Sequence record: OR699282.2 | DNA length: 64,000 nucleotides | Direction: 5' to 3' (one strand) | Shown: piece by piece, positions 1,060 to 20,060 of the stretch | Numbering within the stretch: the first letter of the stretch is position 1 | Layout of the letters: each line of letters starts with the position of its first letter | Program-made: the position numbers and the translations under genes | The notes under the pieces: generated by a model | Database searches by the model: none | Seen by the model: only the letters and a program-made list of their open reading frames with translations | What the model was told of the DNA's origin: nothing

Positions 1060-1158
1060 TTTTTCAGTACTGAATTTTGGGCGTAACTATGCACCCGGTG
1101 GGCTGGAGTCTTTCTCGACTTGATGGAACTATTATACAGTACTGGAAAAATAAAGCAA
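1060..1158 (-). ncRNA. candidate small RNA cassette, CCCA-GGGTGC family copy 1
   Basis: TTGCTT-16-TATAAT (1158-1131), core AGCCCACCGGGTGC at 1104-1091, no ORF. Confidence 0.45.
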
Positions 1159-1188
1159 TACCCTGGAAGCAAAAAAGTTTTAATTAAT

Positions 1189-1280
1189 TTGCTTGCTATC
1201 CTGGGCCGGACTATGGTACTATAATTCAGTACTGAGAAAGTGCGTTTGCCTGCTAGGGTGCGGGAGTGTATCCTTTTTTT
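1189..1280 (+). ncRNA. candidate small RNA cassette copy 2 (degenerate)
   Basis: Core GCCTGCTAGGGTGC 1248-1261 then GGGAGTGTATCC; weak promoter TTGCTT-17-TATGGT. Confidence 0.3.
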
Positions 1281-1284
1281 ATAT

Positions 1285-1374
1285 CTTGAATTTTGGGCGT
1301 AATTCCGCACCCTCTGGGGTTTCCGCTTTCTCGTGTCTATGTAGTAATTATACGCTTTTTCAGGATCAAGTCAA
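1285..1374 (-). ncRNA. candidate small RNA cassette copy 3
   Basis: TTGACT-16-TATAAT (1374-1347), core ACCCCAGAGGGTGC 1320-1307. Confidence 0.4.
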
Positions 1375-1526
1375 TACCTAAAAACAAAATAATTGAAAAT
1401 AATTTAACGCGTTTAAACGGCCTGTAAAGCCCTGGAATGATTGGAATGGTGCAAATGTATAGCTTATGTGTATTAATGCGTTAGAATGCGTCTGAGGCCG
1501 TTTTTTGGGGTGTAGTAGTGATTTGG

Positions 1527-1619
1527 TTGATTCAGTACTGAATAATAGTACTCCTATATAGAAAGATAGTTCCCCTGGATTGATTCAGTACTGAATAATA
1601 GTACTCCTATATAGAAAGA
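1527..1619. repeat. 40-bp direct repeat, 2 copies, period 53
   Basis: TTGATTCAGTACTGAATAATAGTACTCCTATATAGAAAGA at 1527 and 1580. Confidence 0.85.
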
Positions 1620-1733
1620 AAACTATTTTAAAAGTATTTGTAGAAAGTACTTGCACCGTACTGATAAAAGCGTATAATGTTTTACATCGAGAGCGGGAAC
1701 ACTTCCCGCTACACTTTAAAAGAGATGAAAACG

Positions 1734-2096
1734 ATGGCGACTCAAATCAATAAAATCATGCTTAACCTGGTAAACTTCCGCGATGAGATGAAAGGTCTTC
1801 CGGCTGAAACTGTAAAAATTCACATTGCAGCTTATCGGGAACTTATTGCAATGTTGCCGCTTAAGCGTGAACAATACGCCGCTACTTTGATGCTGGATTC
1901 AATGATCCATATAATGATCTCAAATGATTTGACGATGGTTTATCAGTATATGGGCGAAAATTTCGCGGTGTGTAGTAAGCCAGTACCAGGGATGGCAACA
2001 ACTGAGGAATTGCACGGCTTAAACTTAAAACAAGATGCATGGGATAATATGCCTCGTTTCCTGGTATGGGCTGACAGTGGCAAAATTTACAAATAA
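1734..2096 (+). CDS. hypothetical early protein
   Basis: Promoter 1651, leader hairpin, SD, start moved from 1677 to MATQ. Confidence 0.8.
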   Translation: MATQINKIMLNLVNFRDEMKGLPAETVKIHIAAYRELIAMLPLKREQYAATLMLDSMIHIMISNDLTMVYQYMGENFAVCSKPVPGMATTEELHGLNLKQDAWDNMPRFLVWADSGKIYK

Positions 2097-2190
2097 GTTT
2101 AATAAAGTACTTGCATACTAAGTTAAAACAAGTATAATACTTTCTATCAGGTGGGGAATAGTTCCCCACTATAATTAAGAGATTAATTTT

Positions 2191-2424
2191 ATGAGTACTA
2201 TTTTAACTGTTTCTCAATCCGTTGCACTGACTGACCTATTAAACGCTTTAAGCCGTTGCACTGAGGTTGGCTTGTTTGATGTGGTTGACGTTGCACCGGA
2301 CGTTATTAATCATTTTTGTGATGCGATGGAAGAATGTAAGGAAGATGATAGCCGTATGATGGCGGTCGCCTTTGAGGAAGTACAGCCAGGTGAGATCAAA
2401 GGTTTACCAGTACTGAAAAAATAG
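2191..2424 (+). CDS. hypothetical early protein
   Basis: ORF behind promoter 2111 and leader hairpin. Confidence 0.8.
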   Translation: MSTILTVSQSVALTDLLNALSRCTEVGLFDVVDVAPDVINHFCDAMEECKEDDSRMMAVAFEEVQPGEIKGLPVLKK

Positions 2425-2506
2425 TACTTGCAAACTAAGTTTAAAAGCGTATAATGTTTTACATCAGGTGGGGAATAGTTCCCCACTATATAAGAGGATT
2501 AAAAAA

Positions 2507-2746
2507 ATGGCAAAATCAAAAATGTTCTTAGGTCACAAAAACAAAACTCATTGGAATGTAAGCCTGTGGATTAATAACGATGAGGGATTGTATCGGTTGG
2601 CCCTGGATTTTATTAACGACAACACTAATCGCAATGATGCGGCCCGTCATATGATGTTATTTTTAGAACAGACTGGACAAGATAAAACACCGGACGGATT
2701 CAAATATAGCACTACTGCGATCCGTGCGGCGATGGTTGGAATGTAA
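2507..2746 (+). CDS. conserved phage protein, GHKNKTHWNVSLWINN family; paralog of 4620
   Basis: SD GAGG, paralog shares identical 3' DNA. Confidence 0.85.
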   Translation: MAKSKMFLGHKNKTHWNVSLWINNDEGLYRLALDFINDNTNRNDAARHMMLFLEQTGQDKTPDGFKYSTTAIRAAMVGM

Positions 2747-2836
2747 TAGAATAGAATTTATTTAAAGTACTATCGCAAAAAATGATAGTACTTTATAATA
2801 GTGTTTTATTCATACACCAACGATAAGGGCAACAGC

Positions 2837-3103
2837 ATGAATATTAAGTATTTTGCGACGCGTGAACAAGCTCGGATCGCCGCACGCCAGGACGGGGCAA
2901 CGTTTAAAGATATGGGCGTACAATCGGAACGTGGTAAACGTTGGGCCATTGTAAAGCGTAGTACCGCCAGATCATTACAGTACTGGTTAGCGGCCTTAAA
3001 AAGTCCCGATAGTGTATCGCGTCGAGTGGTAGAAATAAAGCTCGACCGAAAGGGCAACCGCGTGACCGTGTACCGTACTAAAAAGATTGCAGTACTTGAA
3101 TAA
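2837..3103 (+). CDS. hypothetical protein, paralog of 16016
   Basis: Shared motifs FATRExAR..FKDMG..RWA and DRKGNRVTVY. Confidence 0.8.
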   Translation: MNIKYFATREQARIAARQDGATFKDMGVQSERGKRWAIVKRSTARSLQYWLAALKSPDSVSRRVVEIKLDRKGNRVTVYRTKKIAVLE

Positions 3104-3190
3104 AAAGTACTTGCAAACTAAGTTTAAAAGCGTATAATGTTTTACATCGAGAGCGGGAACACTTCCCGCCTATAACCTGGAGTAATAAAA

Positions 3191-3421
3191 ATGACTAATA
3201 TGTATATGACTGAAGTTAAAACCGTAAAAGATACTACCACAAATAAAGTTACTTACTTACAGCGGATCTGTGGTGTATGGCAACGTATCAGCAAATCAAA
3301 GTACTTTAAATTAACATCATATGCAAACCGTTCGGATTCATTCAGTACTGAAATAAAAGGTAATAAAGTACACCAATATGGCACTTATTATTATTATAGC
3401 CTGGACGCGATTGCAGTATAA
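3191..3421 (+). CDS. hypothetical early protein
   Basis: Promoter 3111, SD GGAG. Confidence 0.8.
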   Translation: MTNMYMTEVKTVKDTTTNKVTYLQRICGVWQRISKSKYFKLTSYANRSDSFSTEIKGNKVHQYGTYYYYSLDAIAV

Positions 3422-3451
3422 GCAGTTTACAAATCTTTACAATTGCCGGTA

Positions 3452-3535
3452 TTGACTTATTTTGTCAGTACTGGCATAATGTATTCATTGGCAGATAAGC
3501 CGTAGCCCATAGGGTGCGGGAGTGTATCTATAGAA
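3452..3535 (+). ncRNA. candidate small RNA cassette copy 4
   Basis: TTGACT-17-CATAAT, core AGCCCATAGGGTGC 3504-3517, GGGAGTGTATCT. Confidence 0.5.
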
Positions 3536-3544
3536 AAATTAGTT

Positions 3545-3624
3545 TAGTATAGTTACAATTGTGCACCCGGTGGGTTAGCTGTTGTCATGTGGTATATTAT
3601 GCCAGTACTTGATAATGCTGTCAA
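3545..3624 (-). ncRNA. candidate small RNA cassette copy 5 (convergent with copy 4)
   Basis: TTGACA-17-CATAAT (3624-3596), core AACCCACCGGGTGC 3576-3563. Confidence 0.5.
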
Positions 3625-3705
3625 TACTTTTTTTTACTATTCAGTACTGAAAACTATTTTTAAAAAGTACTTGCAAACTATGTTTAAAGGCGTATAATGT
3701 TTTAC

Positions 3706-3780
3706 ATCAGGACGGGGAACGAAATAAGTAACTTCCCGTTAAGTAGCCCAGGAGTAAGGCACACGAAAAACTCCCCTGAT
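3706..3780 (+). ncRNA. candidate three-way-junction RNA, copy 1
   Basis: Behind promoter 3671; ATCAGG/CCTGAT closing stem, ACGGG/CCCGT and GGAG/CTCC arms; no ORF before the next promoter at 3789. Confidence 0.5.
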
Positions 3781-3848
3781 AAAATAGTTTGACAAATGTT
3801 TTTAAAAGCGTATAATACTTACATCAACTACTGAATGAGGGTTACAAA

Positions 3849-4537
3849 ATGAAAACTATCACTACTACTACTTTCGTTATGGATTTTTCTGAATTGAACG
3901 CAGAACAAAAAACGTCAGCTATCGAACTGGTTCGGGAACGTGAAAAAAACTCAAACGACATTTTTCTGAATTGAACGCAGAACAAAAAACGTCAGCTATC
4001 GAACTGGTTCGGGAACGTGAAAAAAACTCAAACGACAATTATTTTTCTGAAAGTGAAATTGAATACTATAAAGAAACAGTACTACCGGAATATGGCATTA
4101 ATGACGCTGAAATACAATTCAGTGGTTTTTGGTCCCAGGGTGACGGTGCATCAATCAGTACTGACCACGTTGACGCAGTGAAGTTTTTACGCAAGGTAAG
4201 AGCATTAACTAAGTATCGCTCAATCCGTCACTTGCTGAATGAAGATGATTTGGCGATGAGTGTAAAGCGTTCGCACTCCCACTACTCGCATGAGAATACT
4301 GTAAGCGGGTACATTGAATCGGCTTACACTGATTTAACCGCAAAACAAGAAACGTTAGTTAATGAGCTTGAGGAACTACTCACTGAAACTATTCGTGAAT
4401 TGTCCCGCAAGTTGTACCGTGATTTAGAGAATGCATATGAGGATCAATTCACTACTGAAAACATTACGGCACTGATTGAGGGTAACGAGTATCAATTCAA
4501 TGTTATTGATGGCGTAGTGGAATCAATCGAATATTAA
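3849..4537 (+). pseudogene. FSGFWSQGDGA-motif phage/plasmid protein, frameshifted by a 77-bp tandem duplication
   Basis: ATG 3849 with SD GAGG; 3884-3960 repeated at 3961-4037; reading stops at ..NDIFLN*, rest is in ORF 3971-4537. Confidence 0.65.
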
Positions 4538-4619
4538 TTTAAAAAGTACTTGTTTAAAGGCGTATAATACTTTATATCGAGGCGGGGAGTGGTTCCCCGC
4601 TCAAACGAGGATTAAAAAA

Positions 4620-4859
4620 ATGGCTAGTACTAAAACTTACAACGGGCACAAAAACAAAACTCATTGGAATGTAAGCCTTTGGATTAATAACGGTGAGTCA
4701 TTGTATCGGCTTGCTCAAAGTTGCATCGCACAAAGTAGAACTAAAGATATTGCAGCGGAATGTATGTACCGCAGATTAAAAGCCAACGGTACTACTACAA
4801 CGCCGGACGGATTCAAATATAGCACTACTGCGATCCGTGCGGCGATGGTTGGAATGTAA
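4620..4859 (+). CDS. conserved phage protein, paralog of 2507
   Basis: GHKNKTHWNVSLWINN and TPDGFKYSTTAIRAAMVGM identical. Confidence 0.85.
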   Translation: MASTKTYNGHKNKTHWNVSLWINNGESLYRLAQSCIAQSRTKDIAAECMYRRLKANGTTTTPDGFKYSTTAIRAAMVGM

Positions 4860-4916
4860 TATTCAGTACTGAGATAATGGCGGGTAATAGTTCCCGCCTT
4901 TACTGAGGGTTATCTA

Positions 4917-5204
4917 ATGAGTAAAGTAATAAAGTACAATGTGTTAAGCAAATCATTGTCTATCAGTGAATGCACCGATGGTTTTTGGATGTACGATGAA
5001 ACGCGTGGCATGAATTTAGCTATGCGTGCAAAAACTGCTGAGGCGGCGTATATTCAAGCACTGGAATACTACCAGGAACGTTTAAAGGAAGTAGAAGAAG
5101 ATTATAAAAGCCTCAAAGCGAAAGTAGATCATTTCGTCGGTCAATTCGTGGAAGACAACGACGAGGACGGGCACTACTGCGACCGTTGCGGATCTTACAG
5201 TTAA
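4917..5204 (+). CDS. hypothetical protein
   Basis: ORF with SD GAGG. Confidence 0.8.
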   Translation: MSKVIKYNVLSKSLSISECTDGFWMYDETRGMNLAMRAKTAEAAYIQALEYYQERLKEVEEDYKSLKAKVDHFVGQFVEDNDEDGHYCDRCGSYS

Positions 5205-5221
5205 GTACTGAGGATTATCTA

Positions 5222-5425
5222 ATGAGTGATTTAATCGACCGCATCAAAGAGCTTGAAGAAAAAGAATTGCAGTTGATCGGGTTACGGAATAAAGTATTCC
5301 ATGATTTAGGTGGCTTTATTAATGCCTGGGATAGTGGCGATCCTGATGCGTTACCTGCTAACCGCCAGGCGATGATCAATGATGTGCGTGGTGTCTTTGA
5401 GTATGTTTTAAAGCAATTAAATTAA
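5222..5425 (+). CDS. hypothetical protein
   Basis: SD GAGG, start moved to MSDLI. Confidence 0.75.
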   Translation: MSDLIDRIKELEEKELQLIGLRNKVFHDLGGFINAWDSGDPDALPANRQAMINDVRGVFEYVLKQLN

Positions 5426-5511
5426 AAAAGTACTTGCAATTAGTTTTCAGTACTGTATAATGGTTTACATCAAAGGGAGAAATGGTTCTCCCTGGTAATG
5501 AGGAAAATAAA

Positions 5512-5733
5512 ATGGCAAATATCACTACTCTTTCCCAACTGGAAGCACTGGTTAAATCTATGCGGGAACATGCCGACAAAATCGGCGTACAAGATCCAGC
5601 CGTTTGCTTCTGCGACGAATTGAATGATGATACCCTGGTAATAGCAGAAGTCCAGGACGTTTCTAACTATTCCTCGCGTTACACTGGCGGCGTAGCAAAT
5701 AAAGGTGACTTCTGTTTATACCTTACAAAATAA
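5512..5733 (+). CDS. hypothetical early protein
   Basis: Promoter 5434, leader hairpin, SD GAGG. Confidence 0.8.
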   Translation: MANITTLSQLEALVKSMREHADKIGVQDPAVCFCDELNDDTLVIAEVQDVSNYSSRYTGGVANKGDFCLYLTK

Positions 5734-5764
5734 CAACGCGGGGAGATAATAACTCCCCGTTACT

Positions 5765-5868
5765 TTTTCAGTACTGAATCATTTAATAGACGGATCTCGG
5801 CACCCGGTGGGTTAGTGACTGTTTCGTCTTGATGTAGTAATTATGCCAGTACTGGATGCACTTGTCAA
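5765..5868 (-). ncRNA. candidate small RNA cassette copy 6
   Basis: TTGACA-17-CATAAT (5868-5840), GAC-GAAACA-GTC hairpin, core AACCCACCGGGTGC 5813-5800. Confidence 0.5.
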
Positions 5869-5975
5869 CAACTATTTTTCAAATACTTTTTATTAAAATA
5901 CTTGCTAATAGTTTTTAAACGCGTATAATGTTTTGCATAGGGGAGCGGTTCCCCTGGTAACTAAGGAATAAGAAA

Positions 5976-6212
5976 ATGCTTGAACAAATCAAATCAACGT
6001 CTGCTAATGTAACGGGAACGGTATCACACTTTATTGGTGATGAATCGCGGGGCGTTCCCTATTGTGCTGTACATGTAAACACTGAGGGTAACTACTGGTT
6101 TACGGTTTACGGATCATATTCATTTGGACGGCCAGGGCATCAAAAAATTCTGGATAAAGTACAGCCAACGGGTAAAAATATCACGGCTGAAATGTTTTAT
6201 AAAAAATCATAA
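5976..6212 (+). CDS. hypothetical early protein
   Basis: Promoter 5902, SD AAGG. Confidence 0.8.
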   Translation: MLEQIKSTSANVTGTVSHFIGDESRGVPYCAVHVNTEGNYWFTVYGSYSFGRPGHQKILDKVQPTGKNITAEMFYKKS

Positions 6213-6296
6213 AGTACTTGATAATAGTTTTTAGTACTGTATAATATTTTACATAGCACGGGGGAGCGGTTCCCCCTGGTAACTAAGGATAATCAA

Positions 6297-6596
6297 ATGA
6301 AAATTGCAATCATCGCCCTGGCTTTATCTGTTTCCTCTTTCGCTGTTAATGCGTCGTTAGATGTGAGTAGTGAAAAATTCATTCAGTGCACTGTTGCGAT
6401 GACCAATGAAAGTACGGGCGAGATTGTTTTAAAGGATTTAGAGATCCAGCCACAAGCATTTAAAAACGGGCCGTTCCATGAAGAAGACGAAAACGGTAGC
6501 ACAACCATTTACTATGATGCCAGTACTAAACGCGGTTCGGTCACGGTTATGGATACTGAGAAAGTAACTCATACAGGCGTTATTAATTGCCGTTGA
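6297..6596 (+). CDS. hypothetical exported protein
   Basis: N-terminus MKIAIIALALSVSSFAVNA looks like a Sec signal peptide; two Cys. Confidence 0.75.
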   Translation: MKIAIIALALSVSSFAVNASLDVSSEKFIQCTVAMTNESTGEIVLKDLEIQPQAFKNGPFHEEDENGSTTIYYDASTKRGSVTVMDTEKVTHTGVINCR

Positions 6597-6617
6597 TTGA
6601 TACTACGGGGTAACATC

Positions 6618-6848
6618 ATGACAGCACGAATAGTTTTACTTAACGAAAGCAGTACTACACAACTACTTAACGCCGTGCATTATGATATTGAAACGAGCGT
6701 TAATCTTATCAGTACTGTCGTACTGTTGGACACTGGAAAGGTCGCCAATGATAAAGCGATTGCAGGTATACTAACGGATCTTGAGCCTGGTAGCAGTGCA
6801 CCAATAACGTTAAATGGTAAAGTGTTTAACATTTTACTTACTGATTAA
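6618..6848 (+). CDS. hypothetical protein
   Basis: ORF followed by terminator. Confidence 0.7.
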   Translation: MTARIVLLNESSTTQLLNAVHYDIETSVNLISTVVLLDTGKVANDKAIAGILTDLEPGSSAPITLNGKVFNILLTD

Positions 6849-6854
6849 GTACAT

Positions 6855-6876
6855 AGCCCACCTGGTGGGCTTTTTT
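6855..6876 (+). terminator. intrinsic terminator
   Basis: AGCCCAC-CTG-GTGGGCT then T-tract. Confidence 0.85.
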
Positions 6877-6965
6877 GTTTTTGTAGTATCGTAGTACTGA
6901 GATACTTTGAAAATAGTTTTAAAAAAGTAGTTGACATTACCGCAGAAAAGCGTAGAATGTATTAC

Positions 6966-7038
6966 ATCAAGACGGGGAGCACTAAGTAGACCGCCAGTAA
7001 GTCGAACGAAAAACTGGACACGTCGAGAAAACTTTGAT
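6966..7038 (+). ncRNA. structured leader, variant of the three-way-junction RNA
   Basis: ATCAAG/TTTGAT closing stem, shared TAAGTAG and CCAG-TAAG-N4-ACGAAAAA-CTGG modules. Confidence 0.4.
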
Positions 7039-7081
7039 ACACTAATAAACGTAAACTAAACTTTAATTGAGGATTTATAAA

Positions 7082-7564
7082 ATGGCTAATGTAAAATCAT
7101 TCATCAAAGCACTGGTAGCAAATGAAACTAACGTCGCGGCTGAGATCCTGGCTGAACTGGATAACGATACCATGAAAGCGGTACGCAATAATTTTAACAT
7201 CGCGTACAGTACTGCGAAAGAACTACAAGCAAATAAAGCGGCAGAAATTGAAGCGGCAAAGGCGGCCCGTGAAGCAGAACTACAAGCAACAATCGAAAGT
7301 ATTCAGGCGGCAGTAGTTGGATTGGATCTGGAAGTAGTTACAGAGATGGCACAAAAAGCCCTGGCGGTTAAGTATGGGGAAGACAAGCCAGAAGTAAAAG
7401 CCAAAAAATGGATTCAGGAACGCGTAGCGGTAGTACTGGACAACGGGGAAGAATATCTGATTCCGGTGCGTGGTAACTGTATTGCGGTAGTACTGGACGC
7501 GATTAACTCCAGTGGTATGACTCGCGAGGAATGGATCGAAGCTCATCGCAAAGTTGAAGCATAA
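7082..7564 (+). CDS. H-NS/StpA-like protein (diverged)
   Basis: Helical N-terminus, Ala/Glu-rich central helix, C-terminus LDNGEEYLIPVRGNCIAVVLDAINSSGMTREEW aligns by eye to H-NS [34 protein letters not shown]. Confidence 0.6.
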   Translation: MANVKSFIKALVANETNVAAEILAELDNDTMKAVRNNFNIAYSTAKELQANKAAEIEAAKAAREAELQATIESIQAAVVGLDLEVVTEMAQKALAVKYGEDKPEVKAKKWIQERVAVVLDNGEEYLIPVRGNCIAVVLDAINSSGMTREEWIEAHRKVEA

Positions 7565-7585
7565 CAATTAAAGTACTGAATCACT

Positions 7586-7612
7586 AGCCCACCTTAAACG
7601 GTGGGCTTTTTT
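7586..7612 (+). terminator. intrinsic terminator
   Basis: AGCCCACC-TTAAAC-GGTGGGCT then T-tract. Confidence 0.85.
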
Positions 7613-7849
7613 GTGTTTATCGTTTACCAGGCCACCAGCACCGCCTAGAAACGATTCTAACGCATTAAACTGATTATCTGATGCATTGCCCTAGCTGGTG
7701 GCGTTAAGGTCGTTGTAATGCGATTGAGAGCGTTTAAAGTATTTTGCAAAAAGTAATAAAAAGTACTTGCACGATTAAGAGATTAGCGTATAATGTTTTA
7801 CATCGAGAGGGGGAAACGGTTCTCCTTCCAAATCAAAGGAATCAAAACA

Positions 7850-8077
7850 ATGGCTATTATCATTACTCGCGTATCTGGTACTACTGGCAACGAACAAGTA
7901 GTTGCAGTCATTACCAACAAGGAAGGTGCGGAATTGCAAAATGCAATGAATACCTGGGCCGTTAATGAGTTCGGTCAGTGGGCAAGTGTAGCATACATTG
8001 AAACCTATCAAGTGCCGTCGATTAGTTTAACTGATTTGGGCGTTGAGCGTATCCTTTGCCTGGATGAATTAAATTAA
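7850..8077 (+). CDS. hypothetical early protein
   Basis: Promoter 7767, SD AAGGA. Confidence 0.8.
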   Translation: MAIIITRVSGTTGNEQVVAVITNKEGAELQNAMNTWAVNEFGQWASVAYIETYQVPSISLTDLGVERILCLDELN

Positions 8078-8162
8078 AAAAGTACTTGCAAAGTAAATCG
8101 AATAAAGTATAATACATTACATCAAGGGGAGAAATGATTCTCCCCACTACAAGGAAACTAAT

Positions 8163-8306
8163 ATGAAAACTTGTCAATGTGGTCAGAAATCTATTACTGG
8201 TTTAAAGCGGGGCGTTGCTCTTTGCCAGTACCATTATAATTTACAAGTATGGGGTAAAGAATGGGCCGACCAGGTGGAAGCAGCAAAGAAAGCAAAAAGT
8301 AAGTAA
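8163..8306 (+). CDS. small Cys-containing protein, 47 aa
   Basis: MKTCQCG..LCQYH; promoter 8086 and SD AAGGA; below the ORF track cutoff. Confidence 0.7.
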   Translation: MKTCQCGQKSITGLKRGVALCQYHYNLQVWGKEWADQVEAAKKAKSK

Positions 8307-8397
8307 AAATATTATCACAGTACTATTGACATAGTTTGATAGTACTGGCATAATAGATTTTATCAAAACGACACATATTAATTTAAGGAATACCAAA

Positions 8398-8721: not shown

Positions 8722-8801
8722 TTAGCTTTACTTTATGCAGATACTTTGATATAGTGTCTGCATAGGGGAAAGAAATTAAATTAACTTAAGAGGATAGTAT
8801 A

Positions 8802-12897: not shown

Positions 12898-12961
12898 AAA
12901 GTAATTGACAGTACTGAAAGATAGTGTATAATGTTTTATATCTTAACTGAGGATAGTAATC

Positions 12962-13318
12962 ATGGGAATACAACATATCACGCGTACTACTGACAATGGC
13001 GAGATCACTGGCTATCAAGTACAGGGCAAAGTAGCACAATTGCAGTACTGGTTTGTTAAACGTGGAATCATTGCACCGGATCTTGATTATGACCGTGTAG
13101 CGTTTATTGATTCTCTTTATGTTGATCCTGATAGTCGGGGCAATGGTGAAGGTAACGAATTAATGAATGCCTTTATCGATGCCGCCGATGATTCAGATTG
13201 TATCATCTTAGAATGCGATACGGGAGAAGATAACGCCTTTAATCTTAAAGAATGGTACGAAGGTTTCGGATTCGAGGTATTGATAGATAGTGAATATCCT
13301 ATCATGATTTTATCATAG
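12962..13318 (+). CDS. GNAT-family acetyltransferase
   Basis: IDSLYVDPDSRGNGEG (motif A) and WYEGFGF. Confidence 0.85.
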   Translation: MGIQHITRTTDNGEITGYQVQGKVAQLQYWFVKRGIIAPDLDYDRVAFIDSLYVDPDSRGNGEGNELMNAFIDAADDSDCIILECDTGEDNAFNLKEWYEGFGFEVLIDSEYPIMILS

Positions 13319-13396
13319 TACTTGCATTTAGTTTTCAGTACTGTTATAGTACTTGCATCAAGGGGAAACATCTTCCCCTACTAAGAGGAAATAAAA

Positions 13397-13585
13397 ATGG
13401 AAAACTTATCAAGTATTTTAGTACAAGATGATTTCGGTAATCCTGGAAGTGCTATCATTGTTCGGGGTAATAAAGCAACATTTGTTATTGCTGGTGGACC
13501 TGTACAGCGTAGCATTAAAAACAATGCCGTTACTATTAATAATGTACGCTATCGCTTAGATAAAGAATTGATTCATAAACTGTAA
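13397..13585 (+). CDS. hypothetical protein
   Basis: Promoter 13322, SD GAGG. Confidence 0.75.
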   Translation: MENLSSILVQDDFGNPGSAIIVRGNKATFVIAGGPVQRSIKNNAVTINNVRYRLDKELIHKL

Positions 13586-13612
13586 TATTAATTTAATAGA
13601 GGATAACAATAA

Positions 13613-13936
13613 ATGTACATTCATACTACTATCACAAAGGAAGTCCGTTGCCAGTTCGAAAGTATTCCGGGCGTATGTTTCATCACTGGTACGTTTTCCC
13701 CTGGTGATCGTGATAATCCAGTACTGTTACAATTACGCCATCCATCATGGGATAAAGCATTTGATCTACCGTTGAATGAATTCGCAACTACTGCTGAAAA
13801 GTACATTAAAAATATTCGCGAGAATGATCGACTATTCATTAATGCTTTTAGTGATTCCGCGTTAAGCGAGATCCACGGCGTATTGGTTGCAATCATGGAA
13901 TCAATGCAGAAAACTAAATTCAAACAAGGTGAATAA
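13613..13936 (+). CDS. hypothetical protein
   Basis: SD GAGG. Confidence 0.75.
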   Translation: MYIHTTITKEVRCQFESIPGVCFITGTFSPGDRDNPVLLQLRHPSWDKAFDLPLNEFATTAEKYIKNIRENDRLFINAFSDSALSEIHGVLVAIMESMQKTKFKQGE

Positions 13937-14019
13937 AAACTATTGACAATGCAATCCAGTACTGTATAATAAGTTACATGAAGGGGAGAAATGATTCTCC
14001 CCACTGAGAGGAAAGAAAA

Positions 14020-14232
14020 ATGCAAGGTCAACTAATCGTTCGTAAATGGTCTGATACTAACGAAAAACCGTGGGATGTACAATACATCGGACCGGATGGG
14101 GTATCACGTTATCAGCCTGGCGTAACGCATAGTACTGAGCAATATGCCGCCGCTCACCGCGAACGCCTGTTAGAATCCATGAAACAGGGATACGGTGAAA
14201 AATTCATTCAAGATCATTGGCTGAAAGATTAA
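14020..14232 (+). CDS. hypothetical early protein
   Basis: Promoter 13943, SD GAGG. Confidence 0.8.
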   Translation: MQGQLIVRKWSDTNEKPWDVQYIGPDGVSRYQPGVTHSTEQYAAAHRERLLESMKQGYGEKFIQDHWLKD

Positions 14233-14249
14233 TAGAAGGAGTACAGCTT

Positions 14250-14342
14250 ATGCAAATGAATCCGATGATTATTGTTTTAGCTGTACTTATGATCATTCAT
14301 GCAATTGTAGAAGTATTAACGCAATCAGGAGTAATAAAATGA
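14250..14342 (+). CDS. small membrane peptide, 30 aa
   Basis: SD AAGGAG, hydrophobic. Confidence 0.55.
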   Translation: MQMNPMIIVLAVLMIIHAIVEVLTQSGVIK

Positions 14343-14512
14343 TTCAAGTAGAATTATCAGTACTGAAAGATCTGTTTTATCGGTTAGGTACTACTGGAGA
14401 GTATCCTAAAAGTGATACCGCAAAACTTTTTGTATCACTCGACTTATGGCAACGCGAACAATTAGTAATGTCCTGGCGTAAAGGTAAAGCAGATAGCGAG
14501 GTGAAAGCATGA
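14339..14512 (+). CDS. hypothetical protein, 57 aa
   Basis: ATGA overlap, SD AGGAG. Confidence 0.65.
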   Translation: MIQVELSVLKDLFYRLGTTGEYPKSDTAKLFVSLDLWQREQLVMSWRKGKADSEVKA

Positions 14513-14658
14513 AAGAATTCTTATTCGAAGTAGTGTTTCAAGGTGTCGGTAGTAACCAACTGATTCGCTCAAGTGGTTACAATGTTAACCAGGCATGGAA
14601 TAACATTAAACAAATGTACCCGAACGCTATCACCTATCGCAACCCGAAAGAAGTTTAA
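14509..14658 (+). CDS. hypothetical protein, 49 aa
   Basis: ATGA overlap, SD GAGG. Confidence 0.65.
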   Translation: MKEFLFEVVFQGVGSNQLIRSSGYNVNQAWNNIKQMYPNAITYRNPKEV

Positions 14659-14676
14659 AAATAATTGAAAAAGGGA

Positions 14677-14785
14677 TTGACTCCGGTCAGTCCCTTTGCT
14701 ATTATATACGCATAGAAACAAATCAGCCCACAGGGTGCATAAATGTATCTATTGTTAGCTGGTGGCTAGTACTGAAAACTATTTT
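14677..14785 (+). ncRNA. candidate small RNA cassette copy 9
   Basis: TTGACT-17-TATTAT, core AGCCCACAGGGTGC 14725-14738, Chi at 14758. Confidence 0.5.
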
Positions 14786-14830
14786 TAAAAAGTACTTGCA
14801 TTGTACTTAGAATCAAGTATAATGTTTTAC

Positions 14831-14903
14831 ATCAGGACGGGGAACGAAACAAGTAACCCCGTTAAGTAGTCCAGGAGTAAGACATACGAAAACCTCCCCT
14901 GAT
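14831..14903 (+). ncRNA. candidate three-way-junction RNA, copy 2
   Basis: Near-identical to 3706-3780, behind promoter 14796, no ORF. Confidence 0.5.
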
Positions 14904-14972
14904 AAAAAAGATTGACAATAGTTTGAAGTACTGATAAAATAATCACATCAACTACTGATAAGGAAACATAAA

Positions 14973-15248
14973 ATGCGGATTCTACTGACAGCTAACGAAA
15001 TCGAACAAGTACTGACTACTAACCTGGAAGACTGGAAACGTGAAGCAGATATCCAGGCGGTTCAATGGCTTAACGATAAGTTAACGCCGGATGACTTAAG
15101 CAAGATTGTAGATCCTCAATTCTACGAAGATATTCACGACACCGCGTTAAGCGTCGAGGATGTACTAGATAAGCACTACATTGATACTGATTTGCAGGTT
15201 TACGGTCGTAAAAACTTTATCACTATTCACGATATTTACAATAATTAA
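14973..15248 (+). CDS. hypothetical early protein
   Basis: Promoter 14912, SD AAGGA. Confidence 0.8.
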   Translation: MRILLTANEIEQVLTTNLEDWKREADIQAVQWLNDKLTPDDLSKIVDPQFYEDIHDTALSVEDVLDKHYIDTDLQVYGRKNFITIHDIYNN

Positions 15249-15334
15249 GTATTGACAAAGTATCTTAGTACTGTATAATAGTTTACATCGAGAGGGGGAA
15301 TGGTTCCCCTCCTAACTAAAAGAGAGAAATAAAA

Positions 15335-15517
15335 ATGGCTAAGTGCACTATCTGTAATAAAGAAATAGTATTAGTTCCAAGTGCCCGTGAACGTGCCGCT
15401 CGGTTCGGTGGCAAAGCGTCAGACTATACAAAAATGTTTACTGCCCATACAGCTTGCCAGGTAGCAAAACGTTCACAAGAAAGCGTAGAATTAATGCGTA
15501 AACTTTCCAAAAAATAA
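15335..15517 (+). CDS. small CxxC..H..C protein
   Basis: MAKCTIC..HTAC; promoter 15252. Confidence 0.75.
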   Translation: MAKCTICNKEIVLVPSARERAARFGGKASDYTKMFTAHTACQVAKRSQESVELMRKLSKK

Positions 15518-15605
15518 GTATTGACAAAGTATCTTAGTACTGTATAATAGTTTACATCAAGTGAGGGGAAACGGTTCCCCTCCTAACAAAGAGAGAGAAA
15601 TAAAA

Positions 15606-15929
15606 ATGGCTATGATCCTTACCCAGAAAGTGGAACTGAAAATTGTAACCTCCTTTGACATTAACGTTAATCGGTGGACTGATTCACACGGCAATACTTA
15701 CCACTCTTGCTACGTGTCTGCTTTAATTGGCGACCGCTGGGAAGACCTGGGACACGAAACCTTTACATACGGTTACGGTACACAAGGCGAATACACGGGC
15801 TTGGAGATCATTAAAGAAACCGTTATAGGTTTCAACCCGAAAGAAAAAGTTATTCACCGCATCGAGGAAGAGATCAACAAAGAAATAACAGTTCGCTACC
15901 ACGATGTAAAACGTAAGAAAGACATGTAA
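15606..15929 (+). CDS. hypothetical protein, paralog of 8398
   Basis: Shared motifs; promoter 15521. Confidence 0.85.
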   Translation: MAMILTQKVELKIVTSFDINVNRWTDSHGNTYHSCYVSALIGDRWEDLGHETFTYGYGTQGEYTGLEIIKETVIGFNPKEKVIHRIEEEINKEITVRYHDVKRKKDM

Positions 15930-16015
15930 TAGAATCCATTTAAAGTACTATTTGACATTGCCCAGATAGTACTTTATAATAGACTCTAACTTGTAGTACT
16001 AACTTAACTAATAGG

Positions 16016-16420
16016 ATGTATACCATGATTACTAAATTCTACGCTACCCGTGAAGCTGCCCGTATTGTTGCACGCGAGGAAGGCGAAACATTTAAAGACA
16101 TGGGCAAAGATGCACCGAAAGGTCAACGCTGGGCCGTACAGTTCAAAGAGATCTCTGATATTGTGAATTCACCGGAGCCAGTACTAACAGCAGCAGAACT
16201 AAAACGAGCGGATTTACTGGCGTCAATACTTGATGCACAAGATGAGTTTATCGCTGATTCTGATATCAAAGTACAGACAAACCATACCGCATGGACTCAC
16301 GCGGATCACCTGGCAAACCTTAAGCGTCCAAGTGAACTGATTCGCAACCAGAAAGAGATCCGACACGACCGTAAGGGTAATCGTGTAACAGTATACAGTA
16401 AACGCCGCCAGGTTATCTAA
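16016..16420 (+). CDS. hypothetical protein, paralog of 2837 with a central insertion
   Basis: FYATREAAR..FKDMG..RWA and DRKGNRVTVY. Confidence 0.8.
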   Translation: MYTMITKFYATREAARIVAREEGETFKDMGKDAPKGQRWAVQFKEISDIVNSPEPVLTAAELKRADLLASILDAQDEFIADSDIKVQTNHTAWTHADHLANLKRPSELIRNQKEIRHDRKGNRVTVYSKRRQVI

Positions 16421-16442
16421 TAACTTGCAGTACTAACAACAC

Positions 16443-16467
16443 GGCGGGATCAGTTCCCGCCTTTTTT
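16443..16467 (+). terminator. intrinsic terminator
   Basis: GGCGGGA-TCAGT-TCCCGCC then T6. Confidence 0.8.
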
Positions 16468-16481
16468 ATAGGACAAACAAA

Positions 16482-16736
16482 ATGATTAAGGTTCAACTAT
16501 ATAAAGATAACATCTTACGGGTACACTATAAAGCACCACAGAGAATCATCACAAAGGCCGTACAGCTTGCTAATGAGTTTATTAATGGTAACCTATTACC
16601 TAGGAAGTTAAGCAACGGGAAACTGCGTGTAATCGACGTGGACACTAACAACAGGATAGTAATCGAGAACACAGGAAAGATAAACCTTTATGAGCATCAA
16701 CAATACAATAAGAAAATAAAACTAATATCACGTTGA
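16482..16736 (+). CDS. possible ParE/RelE-like fold protein
   Basis: Basic 84 aa; pattern KA..G..RKL..VIDV..RIV..HQQYN resembles phage ParE-like proteins. Confidence 0.4.
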   Translation: MIKVQLYKDNILRVHYKAPQRIITKAVQLANEFINGNLLPRKLSNGKLRVIDVDTNNRIVIENTGKINLYEHQQYNKKIKLISR

Positions 16737-16790
16737 CAGTACTCAAATGTTTTAGTACTATATGTACATACCAACACGGGGAGAAACAAA

Positions 16791-17033
16791 ATGATTACTT
16801 TAGAAAAACGTATCAAAGAAACTACATCGCTGGTGGAACTGTTAACAGTACTCAAATGTAAAACTACTCGGTTTAGTACACCGGACTTTATTAATATGGT
16901 TGATGTTAACGGTCGTTATCGTATTGCAGTAGAACAAGGCACGGCAAAAGTATTCAGTACTAAAAACACTAAGGAAGTGATTCACGCGGTTAGTGTGAAA
17001 AAAGTGGTTGCCATTGATAGTAAAGTACTGTAA
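16791..17033 (+). CDS. hypothetical protein
   Basis: SD GGGGAG. Confidence 0.75.
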   Translation: MITLEKRIKETTSLVELLTVLKCKTTRFSTPDFINMVDVNGRYRIAVEQGTAKVFSTKNTKEVIHAVSVKKVVAIDSKVL

Positions 17034-17064
17034 GATAGTTTCATTAACTCAAGGAGAACATGCA

Positions 17065-17649
17065 ATGCGTAATTATACTAAATTCATCCGTACCCTGTCA
17101 GAAATGGAAACCAACAAAGAGATCCTTTCAGCTTGTCGGTTAGCTGGCCTGGAGATCATCGGTGCTGGTTCTTCCCGTATAGTTTTCGCTTTAAATGATC
17201 GGTTAGTGATTAAGGTCGCGAATTGTGATGCGGGTGTAGAACAAAATGAAACTGAATGTAAGGTATGGAATTTTTTAGACTATGACCGCCCTCAGTTGAA
17301 ACAGTACTTTGCAAAGGTGCATATGCATTTATGCGATCCTGATAATATGTTTATCGTTATGGATCGGTTGAGTACTGCAAGCAAAGGCAGTGTGAAGCAC
17401 GTAAACGCGTGCAATGAATTAAAGTACAATATTAAACGTAATGCAATCGAACGCCAGCACCGCTTTGCTGATGCACTACAACACGTTGATGATACATTAT
17501 CAACACTAACGATAAGAGATATCAGAAAACAGAATATCGGCCAGGATCGTAATGGACTTATTAAAGTACTTGATTACGGTTTAACCAGCAATATCTGGAA
17601 TCAGTACTATAAAAAGCGTGATGTGGCAGCAAGTAAGGTAACACGATAA
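17065..17649 (+). CDS. Ser/Thr protein kinase-like protein
   Basis: G-loop IGAGSSRIVF, VIK lysine, alphaC Glu, catalytic DIRKQN, DYG; SD AAGGAG. Confidence 0.85.
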   Translation: MRNYTKFIRTLSEMETNKEILSACRLAGLEIIGAGSSRIVFALNDRLVIKVANCDAGVEQNETECKVWNFLDYDRPQLKQYFAKVHMHLCDPDNMFIVMDRLSTASKGSVKHVNACNELKYNIKRNAIERQHRFADALQHVDDTLSTLTIRDIRKQNIGQDRNGLIKVLDYGLTSNIWNQYYKKRDVAASKVTR

Positions 17650-17667
17650 AAAAGATTAAAAAAGGGA

Positions 17668-17772
17668 TTGACTCCGGTCAGTCCCTTTGCTATTATATAT
17701 CCATTGAGAGATAACTCACTGACCCATAGGGTGCGGAAGTGTATCTATTATATAAGTATTCAGTACTGAAAA
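17668..17772 (+). ncRNA. candidate small RNA cassette copy 10
   Basis: TTGACT-17-TATTAT, TGAG-AGATAA-CTCA, core GACCCATAGGGTGC 17721-17734. Confidence 0.5.
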
Positions 17773-17872
17773 CTATTTGATAAAAAGTACTTGCATTGTA
17801 CTTAGAATCAAGTATAATGTTTTATATCGAGAGGGGGAAATGGTTCTCCCTGGTATATTAAGGAATAAAATC

Positions 17873-18094
17873 ATGACTACAATGACTTGCATTTACGCTT
17901 CCAATCTTCTGAATGATGCGGCCTTTAATGTTGATTCAGAATATCAATGTTATCGGGATGAAAATAAAAAAGTTTTTGTAGTTGATAATAATGGTTTCCA
18001 TATTGAATTGCAATCCGGTTTCACTGGTGTTGATGGTAAATCAGTATGGGGCGTACAGGATGATAAAGGCACATATCATTTTAAACGTAATTAA
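17873..18094 (+). CDS. hypothetical early protein
   Basis: Promoter 17791, SD AAGGA. Confidence 0.8.
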   Translation: MTTMTCIYASNLLNDAAFNVDSEYQCYRDENKKVFVVDNNGFHIELQSGFTGVDGKSVWGVQDDKGTYHFKRN

Positions 18095-18180
18095 GTATTG
18101 ACAAAGTATCTTAGTACTGTATAATAGTTTACATCAAGGGGAGAATAGTTCTCCCCACACCAATAAAAGGAAACATAATT

Positions 18181-18453
18181 ATGTCTAGCTACTCCGCTAC
18201 TATGATCATTAAAGATATGAACGGTAATCCTACTTCTGCTGGTGGATCATTTGGAAACATTAATTTAGATGGTCGGTTATCCATGCAATCAGCAATCGAT
18301 GCAGCGAAAGAAGTTTTTAAGAATGAATGTACTGTTAGTAAGCTGGATTATATGGGATTTGCTATCGAAAAAACTAATCGTTTTGTGAACTACAAAAAAC
18401 CATTGATGATTGATACTAACCTGAAAGCTAACGAAGTGGAGTACTTATTATGA
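18181..18453 (+). CDS. hypothetical early protein
   Basis: Promoter 18098. Confidence 0.8.
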   Translation: MSSYSATMIIKDMNGNPTSAGGSFGNINLDGRLSMQSAIDAAKEVFKNECTVSKLDYMGFAIEKTNRFVNYKKPLMIDTNLKANEVEYLL

Positions 18454-18641
18454 CAGTTGAAGAAGTTAAAAAAGTACTGGCAGTACTACGCTATCATAAT
18501 CATTGCAAGGTGAAGAATGATCCTGATTATCTCGATTCATCCCTGGAAGAGGATACACTACAAGCAATAAGCCATATGCAAACATTAGCAAAGCGTATGA
18601 CTGAAAAGAACATGCCGGACTATATCGGAAATAAAATTTAA
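18450..18641 (+). CDS. hypothetical protein
   Basis: ATGA overlap, SD GGAG. Confidence 0.7.
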   Translation: MTVEEVKKVLAVLRYHNHCKVKNDPDYLDSSLEEDTLQAISHMQTLAKRMTEKNMPDYIGNKI

Positions 18642-18728
18642 AAAGTACTTGCATTGTAGTTAGATTAACGTATAATGTTTTATATCGAGAGGGGGAAATG
18701 GTTTCCCCTCAAGTCCAGGAGATACACC

Positions 18729-18992
18729 ATGAACACTATCGAAATCACTATCAATGCACACGTATACGACAACGTAGTACTGCAAACTACTATGACCGCT
18801 AATGATACCAGTACTTTGCGGAATACTGTTATTAGTGCCGTATGTGCCGCTATCGGTGATGTCGCCCTGGAAAATGCAAAACACGTAAACGATGGTTTCA
18901 CTATGTGCAAACGTGATAACGCAAAACATATCATCGTAGAAGGTTACGGCGGTGTAGAATATAATGTTTATATGAAAAAAGTACTTGCATAA
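18729..18992 (+). CDS. hypothetical early protein
   Basis: Promoter 18649, SD AGGAG. Confidence 0.8.
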   Translation: MNTIEITINAHVYDNVVLQTTMTANDTSTLRNTVISAVCAAIGDVALENAKHVNDGFTMCKRDNAKHIIVEGYGGVEYNVYMKKVLA

Positions 18993-19059
18993 TAACTAAA
19001 ACAAAGTATAATGTTTTGCATAGGGGGAGATATCCTCCCCCACTAAAAGGAGTAATAAA

Positions 19060-19284
19060 ATGGCTAACTTTGATGAACTGATGCGGGAAGTAGCTACCCT
19101 GGCAGAAGAAAAGAAATCATTCGATTCTATCTATAGCACCGCTCACCGTGATTCAGTACTGGCATGTAACCAGGATCAAAAAGATGAACTAATCGCCACC
19201 TATCATGAAGCATGGAAGTACTACCGACAATGGGAGAAAGAAGAAAGAGAGTCTACCATTGACGGCCTCAATAATCTAATCTAA
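19060..19284 (+). CDS. hypothetical early protein
   Basis: Promoter 18985, SD AAGGAG. Confidence 0.8.
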   Translation: MANFDELMREVATLAEEKKSFDSIYSTAHRDSVLACNQDQKDELIATYHEAWKYYRQWEKEERESTIDGLNNLI

Positions 19285-19360
19285 AAGTTTTATTTCAGTA
19301 CTATTGACATAGCTTGATAGTACTGATGTAATAACTTTACTAACTACAAGGGGAAACATA

Positions 19361-19618
19361 ATGGAACAGTTCACACAATATCGGGTAAATCCTCAAGCTA
19401 TGGCCTACGTAGAAGACCATAAAACATTACCAGTACTAACACCAATTAAAGGCCATATCTATCGTGCAATGTCATGGAATACCGCCCAGGATAGATATAC
19501 TACCGCTGGCGTGGGTATGTATTGCGGGAATGGTGAATGGTTTGATCCAAATAATCCGGTAGCCATTGACAGTACTGAAAAAATGAAATGGGCCGACTAC
19601 ATCGAAGATATTTCATAA
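19361..19618 (+). CDS. hypothetical early protein
   Basis: Promoter 19304. Confidence 0.8.
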   Translation: MEQFTQYRVNPQAMAYVEDHKTLPVLTPIKGHIYRAMSWNTAQDRYTTAGVGMYCGNGEWFDPNNPVAIDSTEKMKWADYIEDIS

Positions 19619-19708
19619 AAACTATTTGACAGTACTAACCAGTAATGTATAATGTTTTACATAGAGCGGGGGAATAGTTCTCCCGCCAATAGTTTGGAGT
19701 AAAACATT

Positions 19709-19909
19709 ATGTCTATCGCTATCGCCCTGGTTGAAGTACTGAAAGAAGCTAAAGCCAACCAGATCGACGTAAAGATCCAGGAACTACAAAACGGCGTAAT
19801 CGGCTGTACTTGTACCGCTGGTGGAGCGGCAGACTATCGAGAACACGAATCACTCGAATCACTGGTTCGGTATCTTACCATGATCGTTGATGATTGGAGA
19901 ATCATCTAA
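19709..19909 (+). CDS. hypothetical early protein
   Basis: Promoter 19626, SD GGAG. Confidence 0.8.
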   Translation: MSIAIALVEVLKEAKANQIDVKIQELQNGVIGCTCTAGGAADYREHESLESLVRYLTMIVDDWRII

Positions 19910-19930
19910 CAAAAAAGAATAAAAAAGGGA

Positions 19931-20060
19931 TTGACTCCGGTCAGTCCCTTTGCTATTATATACGCATAGACAAAAACTAGCCCACAGGGTGCATAGGTGT
20001 ATCCAAAATATATAGTTAATAACGGTGAGTAACTATCTGCTGGTGGAGTGAAAACTATTA
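19931..20060 (+). ncRNA. candidate small RNA cassette copy 11
   Basis: TTGACT-17-TATTAT, core AGCCCACAGGGTGC 19979-19992, Chi at 20039. Confidence 0.5.

Follow-up and report, generated by a model that had tools for sequence, protein, structure and literature searches.

The left end of the genome of Escherichia phage BAU.Micro_ELP-22 (OR699282.2, Asteriusvirus, 373,488 bp), analyzed here as a window of 64,000 nt, carries eleven copies of a promoter-driven cassette without an open reading frame (ORF). The cassettes are a real, conserved RNA family of unusual architecture, absent from Rfam and from the literature searched. A first-pass annotation, made from the letters of the window alone, had listed eleven sites and proposed an undescribed multicopy RNA built around a short core hairpin. 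Our tentative reading, to which we give a little less than an even chance, is that the cassettes encode short non-coding RNAs that act in trans, with the invariant hairpin serving to bind a protein.

The core RRCCCAYMGGGTGC matched the window exactly nine times, compared to 0.02 matches expected. With cassettes named by core position and strand, the core of 1307(-) was found at one mismatch and that of 1248(+) was degenerate (GCCTGCTAGGGTGC). We built a covariance model (R1) on 18 copies, all drawn from other phages and from metagenomes and none from the window; MAFFT set the upstream hairpin of the cassette (H1) out of register, and a gapless seed with model-based alignment was used instead. 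Run over the 64 kb with filters off, R1 returned exactly the eleven sites of the first-pass annotation, nine at E ≤ 6e-5 and the two degenerate copies, 1307(-) and 1248(+), at 0.045 and 0.41; the next match had E > 2. No further copies were found in another 104 kb of the same genome (64–114 kb and 298–352.2 kb, the middle 184 kb being outside the scan). Pattern scans together with R1 yielded 142 copies, 112 of them distinct, from 42 phage-like sources, including 121Q-type and GAP32 sequences, presumed RaK2 and CBB sequences and metagenome contigs. RaK2-like jumbo phages have the family in common. A blastn search with one cassette gave matches confined to this phage group, in which the site was either unannotated or lay under a hypothetical protein. 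In the Cronobacter phage GAP32, which belongs to another genus, 13 copies are spread over 3.7–23.6 kb, and each occupies an annotated intergenic gap. In the window, copies are either single and 1.7–4.9 kb apart or arranged in inverted pairs.

The annotation's view that the RNA is undescribed was upheld. Using Rfam 15, cmscan of positions 1–22000 with permissive filters returned a single match up to E = 1, a chance microRNA away from the cassettes. A full-text search for the core string gave unrelated papers only, and the element is not described in the RaK2, CBB and Sharanji papers. The E. coli genome gave no match at blastn sensitivity, at which matches of 12–14 nt are invisible, and no complement of the core with up to one mismatch was present as a base-pairing target in ~190 kb of phage genome. 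Possible likenesses to a tmRNA segment, to RNase P RNA and to the anticodon stem of tRNA-Thr were given no weight.

Read from the predicted start, the RNA begins A-U-N and continues with H1 (a 3–5-bp stem with a purine-rich loop of 6–8 nt), a 2–3-nt linker, the core A-R-CCC-AYA-GGG-U-G-C, the flank R-G-A-R-R and the tail U-S-Y-R-U-C-Y-A-U-A. The module measures ~48 nt, and its core is a nearly invariant hairpin of 4 bp closed over a three-base loop. The TGTA(T/A)C element that had been noted after the core proved to be part of this longer conserved tail. Conservation stops ~21 nt past GGG, where it drops to the AT-rich background.

H1 was confirmed as the covarying purine-loop hairpin that had been proposed. 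Each of its four pairs varies on both sides, with 91% of cells paired, giving a covariation score of 0.424 compared to 0.087 in shuffles (0 of 500 reached 0.424) and at most 0.079 with slid partners. The alignment behind this score is fitted to the model, and two independent checks agree with it: a model-free parse recovered 23 distinct complementary H1 stems in 67 representatives, and the top four mutual-information pairs were the four H1 pairs. H1 is absent from 13 of the 67 representative cassettes. In the CCC/GGG stem, the only departures from invariance are compensatory C-G to U-A changes in two rows, and the loop occurs as AYA, ACC, AUU, UAGA, UCAA or UUUA. G.U pairs outnumber A.C pairs by 17 to 2, and R42–U57, the fourth core pair, occurs as A-U (51 rows) or G.U (57 rows); both observations place the fold on the sense strand, unlike a symmetric DNA cruciform. 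Behavior of the 5′ part of the units as a conserved structured RNA is supported by these comparisons. Among orthologues, substitutions amounted to 2.5% in the core, 2.6% in the promoter and 6.7% in H1, figures that are suggestive only as there are 1–4 orthologues per cassette.

About 20 of 30 ordinary early units (2428–20110, plus strand) also begin with CAUCRAG followed by a 6–7-bp GC hairpin (for example, GGGGAGAAAUGAUUCUCCCC) ~10–15 nt before the Shine–Dalgarno sequence (SD), a leader that is probably an mRNA stabilizer. H1 is therefore a generic early-leader hairpin rather than a cassette-specific one, leaving the core hairpin and tail as the part specific to the cassettes. Most of several further candidates within the module were rejected. 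Pairing of the tail with the 5′ end or the H1 loop fails across subfamilies, and mutual information gives the tail no partner. Wobble pairing of the tail with the invariant GGGUG may occur, as the Y-R-Y-Y-Y pattern of the tail is compatible with it, but the strongest combination (CA) is the rarest. A −10-like hexamer after the tail, as for sigma-dependent pausing, occurs in only 23 of 89 copies, and neither a hidden small ORF nor a leaderless start is conserved.

The first-pass annotation had assigned a sigma70 promoter to every copy. This held for ten of the eleven, in which a good promoter lies at a fixed distance, and not for 1248(+), which has a −10 only and no −35 at 16–18 bp. Nine of the eleven promoters combine TTGAC(A/T) and a spacer of 17 bp with an imperfect hexamer (CATAAT or TATTAT) that is preceded by TGn, whereas ORF units use TTGCAA or TTGACA, a spacer of 16 bp and TATAAT lacking TG; the cassette promoters are a distinct class of their own. 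Compared to the early ORF units, the module stands where the SD and ORF would be. Across phage-like loci, the core lies behind a promoter at equal distance and in the same orientation in 124 of 124 copies, including 12 that failed a strict −35 filter yet show a clear −10 and a TTGC-type −35, whereas 93 chance core matches in GC-rich metagenome contigs have no such promoter. No promoter-less core was found in phage loci, which speaks against the outcome that the first-pass annotation had named as refuting its proposal, a core working as a DNA site regardless of the promoter. The predicted start-to-core distance varies between 13 and 22 nt and tracks H1 length, which fits an RNA element better than a fixed-position DNA site.

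We weighed these data against a role at the level of DNA or transcription, with the RNA product irrelevant, such as R-loop or origin transcripts (as at T4 oriE, oriF and oriG and at T7 origins), iteron activation, recombination hot spots in the terminal repeat or polymerase-collision insulators. In favor of such a role, every copy is found within the direct terminal repeat (DTR), at 2–3-kb intervals, and GAP32 has a similar layout. Convergent pairs form large palindromes in which the gaps are quantized and an AGTACT or Fur-like box stands at the center. The leftmost cassettes are directed at an iteron array of 8-bp periodicity (808–907), and GAP32 keeps the order of iterons followed by a cassette pair. 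Chi sites, too, crowd the DTR. We nevertheless consider this role rather unlikely. The fold is sense-strand-specific and G.U-tolerant, and transcription alone would need neither a covarying H1 nor an invariant core sequence. The conserved segment is GC-rich, and conservation ends where AT-rich DNA, the expected unwinding element, begins; checked as an unwinding element of the T4 oriF/oriG type, the AT-rich DNA after the module was not conserved and no different from background. Moreover, just one of the eleven sites is near the iterons, and convergent primers would collide.

In the trans-acting reading that we favor, host sigma70 RNA polymerase would start at a strong, usually TGn-extended −10 promoter, and the first ~48 nt of RNA would be the functional module, with the optional H1 probably acting as a 5′-end stabilizer as on the ordinary early mRNAs of the phage. 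Eleven copies per DTR, and hence 22 per virion genome, would make the RNA abundant from the first minutes of infection. The invariant hairpin would be bound sequence-specifically by a host or phage protein, which the RNA would then titrate or recruit in trans. The hairpin, loop and flank are invariant across genera, which points to sequence-specific recognition by something equally conserved. We infer the shortness, abundance and early timing of the RNA, its protein partner and its action in trans.

The fate of the transcript past the module was surveyed in 121 distinct copies. Convergent pairs account for 43, a following promoter for 41, a terminator for 12 and an SD with ATG for one, and 24 have no visible stop; the terminator rule was strict and missed a real terminator at 5759–5739. 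That bidirectional intrinsic terminator follows the AGTACT of 5800(-) and predicts an RNA of ~105–110 nt. Compared to a small RNA gene in which promoter and intrinsic terminator bound 50–300 nt, the promoter is present in all copies, and those not followed by a terminator end in a twin, in the next promoter or with no visible stop. The annotation's statement that no SD or ORF follows the window cassettes was borne out, as the plus-strand copies are followed 31–64 nt later by the next gene's own promoter. In the 22 distinct convergent pairs, the gap between the 48-nt modules is 13 nt (15 pairs), 24 nt (three pairs) or 31 nt (four pairs), and no divergent pairs occur within 300 bp. A stop follows the solitary minus-strand copies and the next promoter follows the plus-strand copies, a pattern suggesting that nothing beyond the 5′ module is important and that the transcript is kept from extending into regions where it would be antisense to genes.

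Several observations weigh against our reading. A recognizable terminator follows just 12 of the 121 copies, and plus-strand copies would read into the next gene. In one copy in a relative (L018_12615), the SD and ATG come directly after the module, which can therefore also serve as an mRNA leader. Read-through RNA of the 3504(+)/3563(-) pair is predicted to form an imperfect hairpin of ~30 bp (−42.8 kcal/mol, z −5.7), and read-through within a convergent pair would thus enclose the module in a hairpin of 30 bp. Copies recur every 2–3 kb without clustering, a spread that dosage alone does not require. Pfam detected no RNA-binding domain among 52 DTR proteins, giving no candidate partner. Finally, the start sites were inferred from promoter geometry, and 3′ ends, abundance and timing are predictions as well.

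If the RNA does titrate a host protein, it would exemplify a new principle of host takeover or anti-defense by RNA dosage. Phages of the RaK2/121Q group are therapy candidates whose early program is almost unannotated. The fixed pair gaps of 13, 24 and 31 nt, the TGn promoter class with its 17-bp spacer and, in relatives, the host-type operator boxes past the module are each unusual and also bear on how short phage transcripts are ended or gated.

An alternative is that the module acts in cis as a nascent-RNA element on its own polymerase, in the manner of put, by altering pausing, termination or roadblock passage. In that case the cassettes would launch modified polymerases or be regulated leaders, with host LexA or Fur gating extension in relatives. 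The known precedent is put of phage HK022, which suppresses pausing and termination in cis through the beta′ zinc-binding domain. putL lies just 3′ of its promoter, and put RNAs are ~70 nt with long stems and a triplex (PMC9378689). Like put, the module is a promoter-proximal phage RNA made by host RNA polymerase, has no ORF of its own, always stands at the transcript start and has two stem-loops as in putL. The sequence past the module is variable; four window copies begin within a terminator hairpin, at which arriving polymerases would be halted and fresh ones launched; and the order of promoter, RNA element and terminator is usual in antitermination systems. The fixed spacing of LexA-like boxes, Fur-like boxes and AGTACT suggests a coupling to elongation, and one copy is the direct 5′ untranslated region of a gene.

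Set against this, 43 of the 121 copies face a twin 13–31 nt away and have nothing to transcribe, with divergent pairs lacking; solitary minus-strand copies point away from every gene; and each plus-strand window copy precedes the next gene's own promoter. By the published description of put, the ~48-nt module with its stems of 3–5 bp is also shorter in both respects. Two put copies per genome stand before operons, whereas cassettes number 11–13 per 20 kb, occur on both strands and are to a third in convergent pairs. Similar to lambda nut, the cassette places a small hairpin with a purine-rich loop beside a conserved linear box in an early leader; however, the order is reversed (hairpin, then box), no boxA-like sequence is present, H1 is optional and shared with ordinary early mRNAs, and no N-like protein was identified among 52 DTR proteins. 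Copy number and convergent pairs without downstream genes also misfit antitermination. We regard a cis-acting element as unlikely, though the least unlikely of the rival readings.

Short motifs past the module bear on how its transcript might end. AGTACT begins within 30 nt of the module in 56 of 93 copies, compared to 17.5% expected, with enrichment at 3–14 nt and a peak at +3 to +7. Its association with the cassettes, asserted by the first-pass annotation, thus stood in terms of enrichment, but the motif is not cassette-specific and is found genome-wide. There are 255 sites in the window versus ~21 expected (~12-fold), 137 of them in 1–21279. The motif mostly takes the form CAGTACTG (60 copies), abuts −35 boxes (AAAAAGTACTTGCA) and also occurs in cassette-promoter spacers and just past genes and modules. 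AGTACT is probably the site of a dimeric DNA-binding protein. A SlmA site was rejected for this motif: neither GAGTACTC nor GTGAGTACTCAC occurs (0 copies each), CAGTACTG being favored instead.

In relatives, LexA-like boxes (CTGT-N8-ACAG) start at +8 or +9 past the module in 12 of 94 representatives, and approximately two-thirds of all 20 such boxes in the scanned loci (232 kb) adjoin the 3′ side of a module. Fur-like boxes, defined by at least 14 of 19 positions, start at +2, +3 or +10 in another 12 of the 94. Near-consensus LexA boxes (for example, TACTGTACATAAAAACAGTA) and Fur boxes (for example, GAGAATGATAATCATTTAC) were seen in GAP32-like, CBB-like and RaK2-like phages; examples are L115:2115-2162(-) at +8, L008:6396-6445(-) at +9, L054:4573-4620(-) at +3 and L005:8030-8077(+) at +2. 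The 24-nt and 31-nt gaps of convergent pairs are filled by Fur-like boxes. No LexA-like or Fur-like box adjoins a cassette in the window. We hold it quite unlikely that the module is a clade-wide, high-copy early RNA kept short by host DNA-binding proteins or colliding polymerases, with SOS and iron status deciding through LexA-like and Fur-like operators between a free protein-binding decoy of 50–60 nt and an extended antisense or double-stranded off form. Such an RNA sensor-and-decoy circuit, if true, would be of a kind we know in no other phage.

Four of the cassette promoters are embedded in a 12-bp hairpin resembling a terminator, AAAGGGATTGAC-TCCG-GTCAGTCCCTTT. These UCCG-loop hairpins (10632–10659, 14670–14697, 17661–17688 and 19924–19951) contain the −35 of the next promoter and look like terminators of the upstream gene, in a compact terminator–promoter design analogous to that of the composites of stem-loop and early promoter known as PeSLs in T4-type phages (PMC2839356, PMC4122927). 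We considered whether the cassettes are mobile or recombinogenic promoter–terminator modules that spread and shuffle early genes by homology, the core being a hitch-hiker or a sequence targeted by an endonuclease or recombinase of the phage. Like PeSLs, they are repeated regulatory cassettes between small early genes, in this case unrelated genes of a plastic early region; four copies (class b) join a terminator-type stem-loop (A3G3...C3T3) to an early promoter as described (PMC4122927), and promoter-less remnants of the module tail occur at 725–790. Seven of the eleven promoters, however, have no stem-loop, and the conserved part of the cassette is transcribed, lying 3′ of the start site and being retained with promoters of two unrelated types. 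Genera whose promoters and H1 stems have fully diverged still share an invariant core, which in orthologues changes as little as the promoter does (2.5%, compared to 6.7% for H1, in a small sample). Compensatory changes indicate selection on the RNA fold. Shuffling modules are distinctly improbable in our judgment.

The first-pass annotation had also offered a decoy for a host RNA-binding defense protein, such as a type III toxin or Cas6/Cas5d. In this reading the RNA would mimic either a CRISPR repeat, as an RNA anti-CRISPR does, or the antitoxin of a type III system, and so disarm a host nuclease. The hosts carry type I-E and I-F CRISPR systems, and a small GC hairpin produced from many copies would suit such a role. 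In local alignments, four modules were no closer to I-E, I-F and I-C repeats than to shuffled repeats, 14–91% of which reached the observed score. The core is also identical in phages of Escherichia, Cronobacter and presumably Klebsiella and Pectobacterium, whose repeats differ. The antitoxin version fails because the copies are scattered and single, not tandem units of 34–36 nt, and Pfam found no ToxN-type domain among the 52 DTR proteins. Mimicry in either form is highly improbable. Like Qrr- or CsrB-type sponges and RNA anti-CRISPRs, the cassettes are multicopy RNA genes with a conserved recognition element and variable parts, and their dosage suggests titration. They differ from such sponges and decoys in that the module has no GGA array and no CRISPR-repeat similarity, and 190 kb of phage genome holds no seed-complementary site.

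A parallel is offered by Pseudomonas phage PA5oct, another jumbo phage with transcribed regions that have no ORF in its long terminal repeat. Its DTR encodes ncRNA001 and ncRNA002, single-copy RNAs of 236 and 451 nt that are abundant by RNA-seq (PMC7318152). The PA5oct preprint relates this phage to 121Q, PBECO4, RaK2 and GAP32. Kinship of these RNAs with the cassettes was rejected, as they have no similarity to the module and R1 finds nothing in that region.

Table 1 Positions of the terminal repeat, the cassettes and their convergent pairs in the window
Feature	Position	Strand	R1 E value	Details
Direct terminal repeat (DTR)	1-21279			holds all 11 cassettes
Cassette 1091(-)	1075-1158	-	6e-5	-35 1158-1153, -10 1136-1131; module ~1124-1075; H1 GUC-GAGAAA-GAC; core AGCCCACCGGGUGC; tail ACGCCCAAAA; AGTACT 3 nt past module
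Cassette 1248(+), degenerate	1220-1277	+	0.41	-10 TATAAT 1220-1225; shifted core hairpin CCU-GCU-AGG
Cassette 1307(-)	1291-1374	-	0.045	promoter TTGACT-16-TATAAT 1374-1347; core ACCCCAGAGGGUGC; tail ACGCCCAAAA
Convergent pair 1248(+)/1307(-)	1224-1277/1291-1348	+/-		modules, 13-nt gap; 1248(+) left, 1307(-) right
Cassette 3504(+)	3452-3533	+	4e-12	-35 3452-3457, TGg-CATAAT 3475-3480; module 3487-3533; H1 GGC-AGAUAA-GCC
Cassette 3563(-)	3547-3624	-		promoter 3624-3596; module 3588-3547; without H1
Convergent pair 3504(+)/3563(-)	3487-3533/3547-3588	+/-		modules, 13-nt gap
Cassette 5800(-)	5722-5868	-		promoter 5868-5840; module 5830-5784; AGTACT at +8
Cassette 10692(+)	10632-10721	+		terminator-like hairpin 10632-10659 encloses -35 10639-10644; TGc-TATTAT 10662-10667; module 10674-10721; next gene's promoter from 10772
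Cassette 12368(+)	12313-12397	+		promoter 12313-12341; module ~12348-12397; H1 GAC-GAGAAC-GUC
Cassette 14725(+)	14670-14754	+		hairpin-embedded promoter 14670-14705; module 14712-14754; without H1; Chi 3 nt past module
Cassette 17721(+)	17661-17750	+	2e-15	hairpin-embedded promoter 17661-17696; module 17703-17750; best R1 match (65.9 bits)
Cassette 19979(+)	19924-20008	+		hairpin-embedded promoter 19924-19959; module 19966-20008; without H1

The 21,279 bp at the left end of the window recur at the end of the record (OR699282.2) with 0 mismatches and therefore constitute the DTR; positions 1000–6000 of the window match the same positions of that record at 100% identity. Relatives have comparable repeats of 21,525 bp (annotated) and 20,668 bp (PhageTerm). 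GC content is 36–41% within the DTR and ~31% beyond. All substantial ORFs of the window are on the plus strand, and the minus strand, the gene-free one, bears five of the eleven cassettes. The claim that cassettes are the only minus-strand transcription units stood insofar as all real genes are on the plus strand, but one additional minus-strand promoter, not belonging to a cassette, lies at 1033–1005. The genes flanking the cassettes are small, mutually unrelated and not paralogous, in an early region that is plastic.

GenBank lists small coding sequences over cassette promoters or modules at 944–1427, 10639–10740, 12366–12560, 14569–14946, 17668–17769 and 20048–20143. They begin 5′ of the predicted transcription start or cross promoters, and are probably annotation artifacts. 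Genome annotations of the group should carry a non-coding RNA feature at the cassettes in place of small hypothetical proteins. Among the 52 small DTR proteins (1677–21252), Pfam identified a DksA/TraR zinc finger (12640–12897), a GNAT acetyltransferase (12962–13318), one ParE-like toxin domain, two DUF7249 proteins and a weak kinase-like match. Outside the window (OR699282.2, 69–72 kb and 321.9–322.5 kb), an RNA ligase, a polynucleotide kinase, a nucleotidyltransferase and a protein kinase are annotated, the last with the record note 'positively regulates RNaseIII; negatively on RNaseE'. These proteins may bear on the fate of double-stranded RNA possible from convergent cassette pairs.

Chi (GCTGGTGG) occurs 12 times in the window compared to 0.41 expected. 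Eleven sites are in the DTR (578-, 590+, 7632-, 7694+, 12027+, 13490+, 14758+, 16829+, 18238+, 19817+ and 20039+) and one is outside it (60026-). The nine on the plus strand have the orientation that RecBCD recognizes when entering from the right terminus, and a minus-strand Chi 578 bp from the left terminus sits inside an CCACCAGC-acaa-GCTGGTGG hairpin. Related loci contain one Chi per 2.2 kb. This density looks like protection of DNA ends from RecBCD or promotion of recombination; a link between Chi and the cassettes was rejected, as none was seen beyond the general density.

The non-coding left 1.65 kb of the DTR contains an iteron-like array with an 8-bp period (GGCTAAAC, GGCTAGAC and CTGGATGG) at 805–907, unique in the window. 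Beside it, at 721–790, are two tandem promoter-less remnants of the left-end-type module tail (TTTTGGGTGTA and TTTTGGGCGTA). In GAP32 (L141), iterons at 3508–3586 precede a cassette pair at 3769/3830, so that both the sequence of the array and its position next to the first pair are kept. The array is a candidate origin or terminase-binding site.

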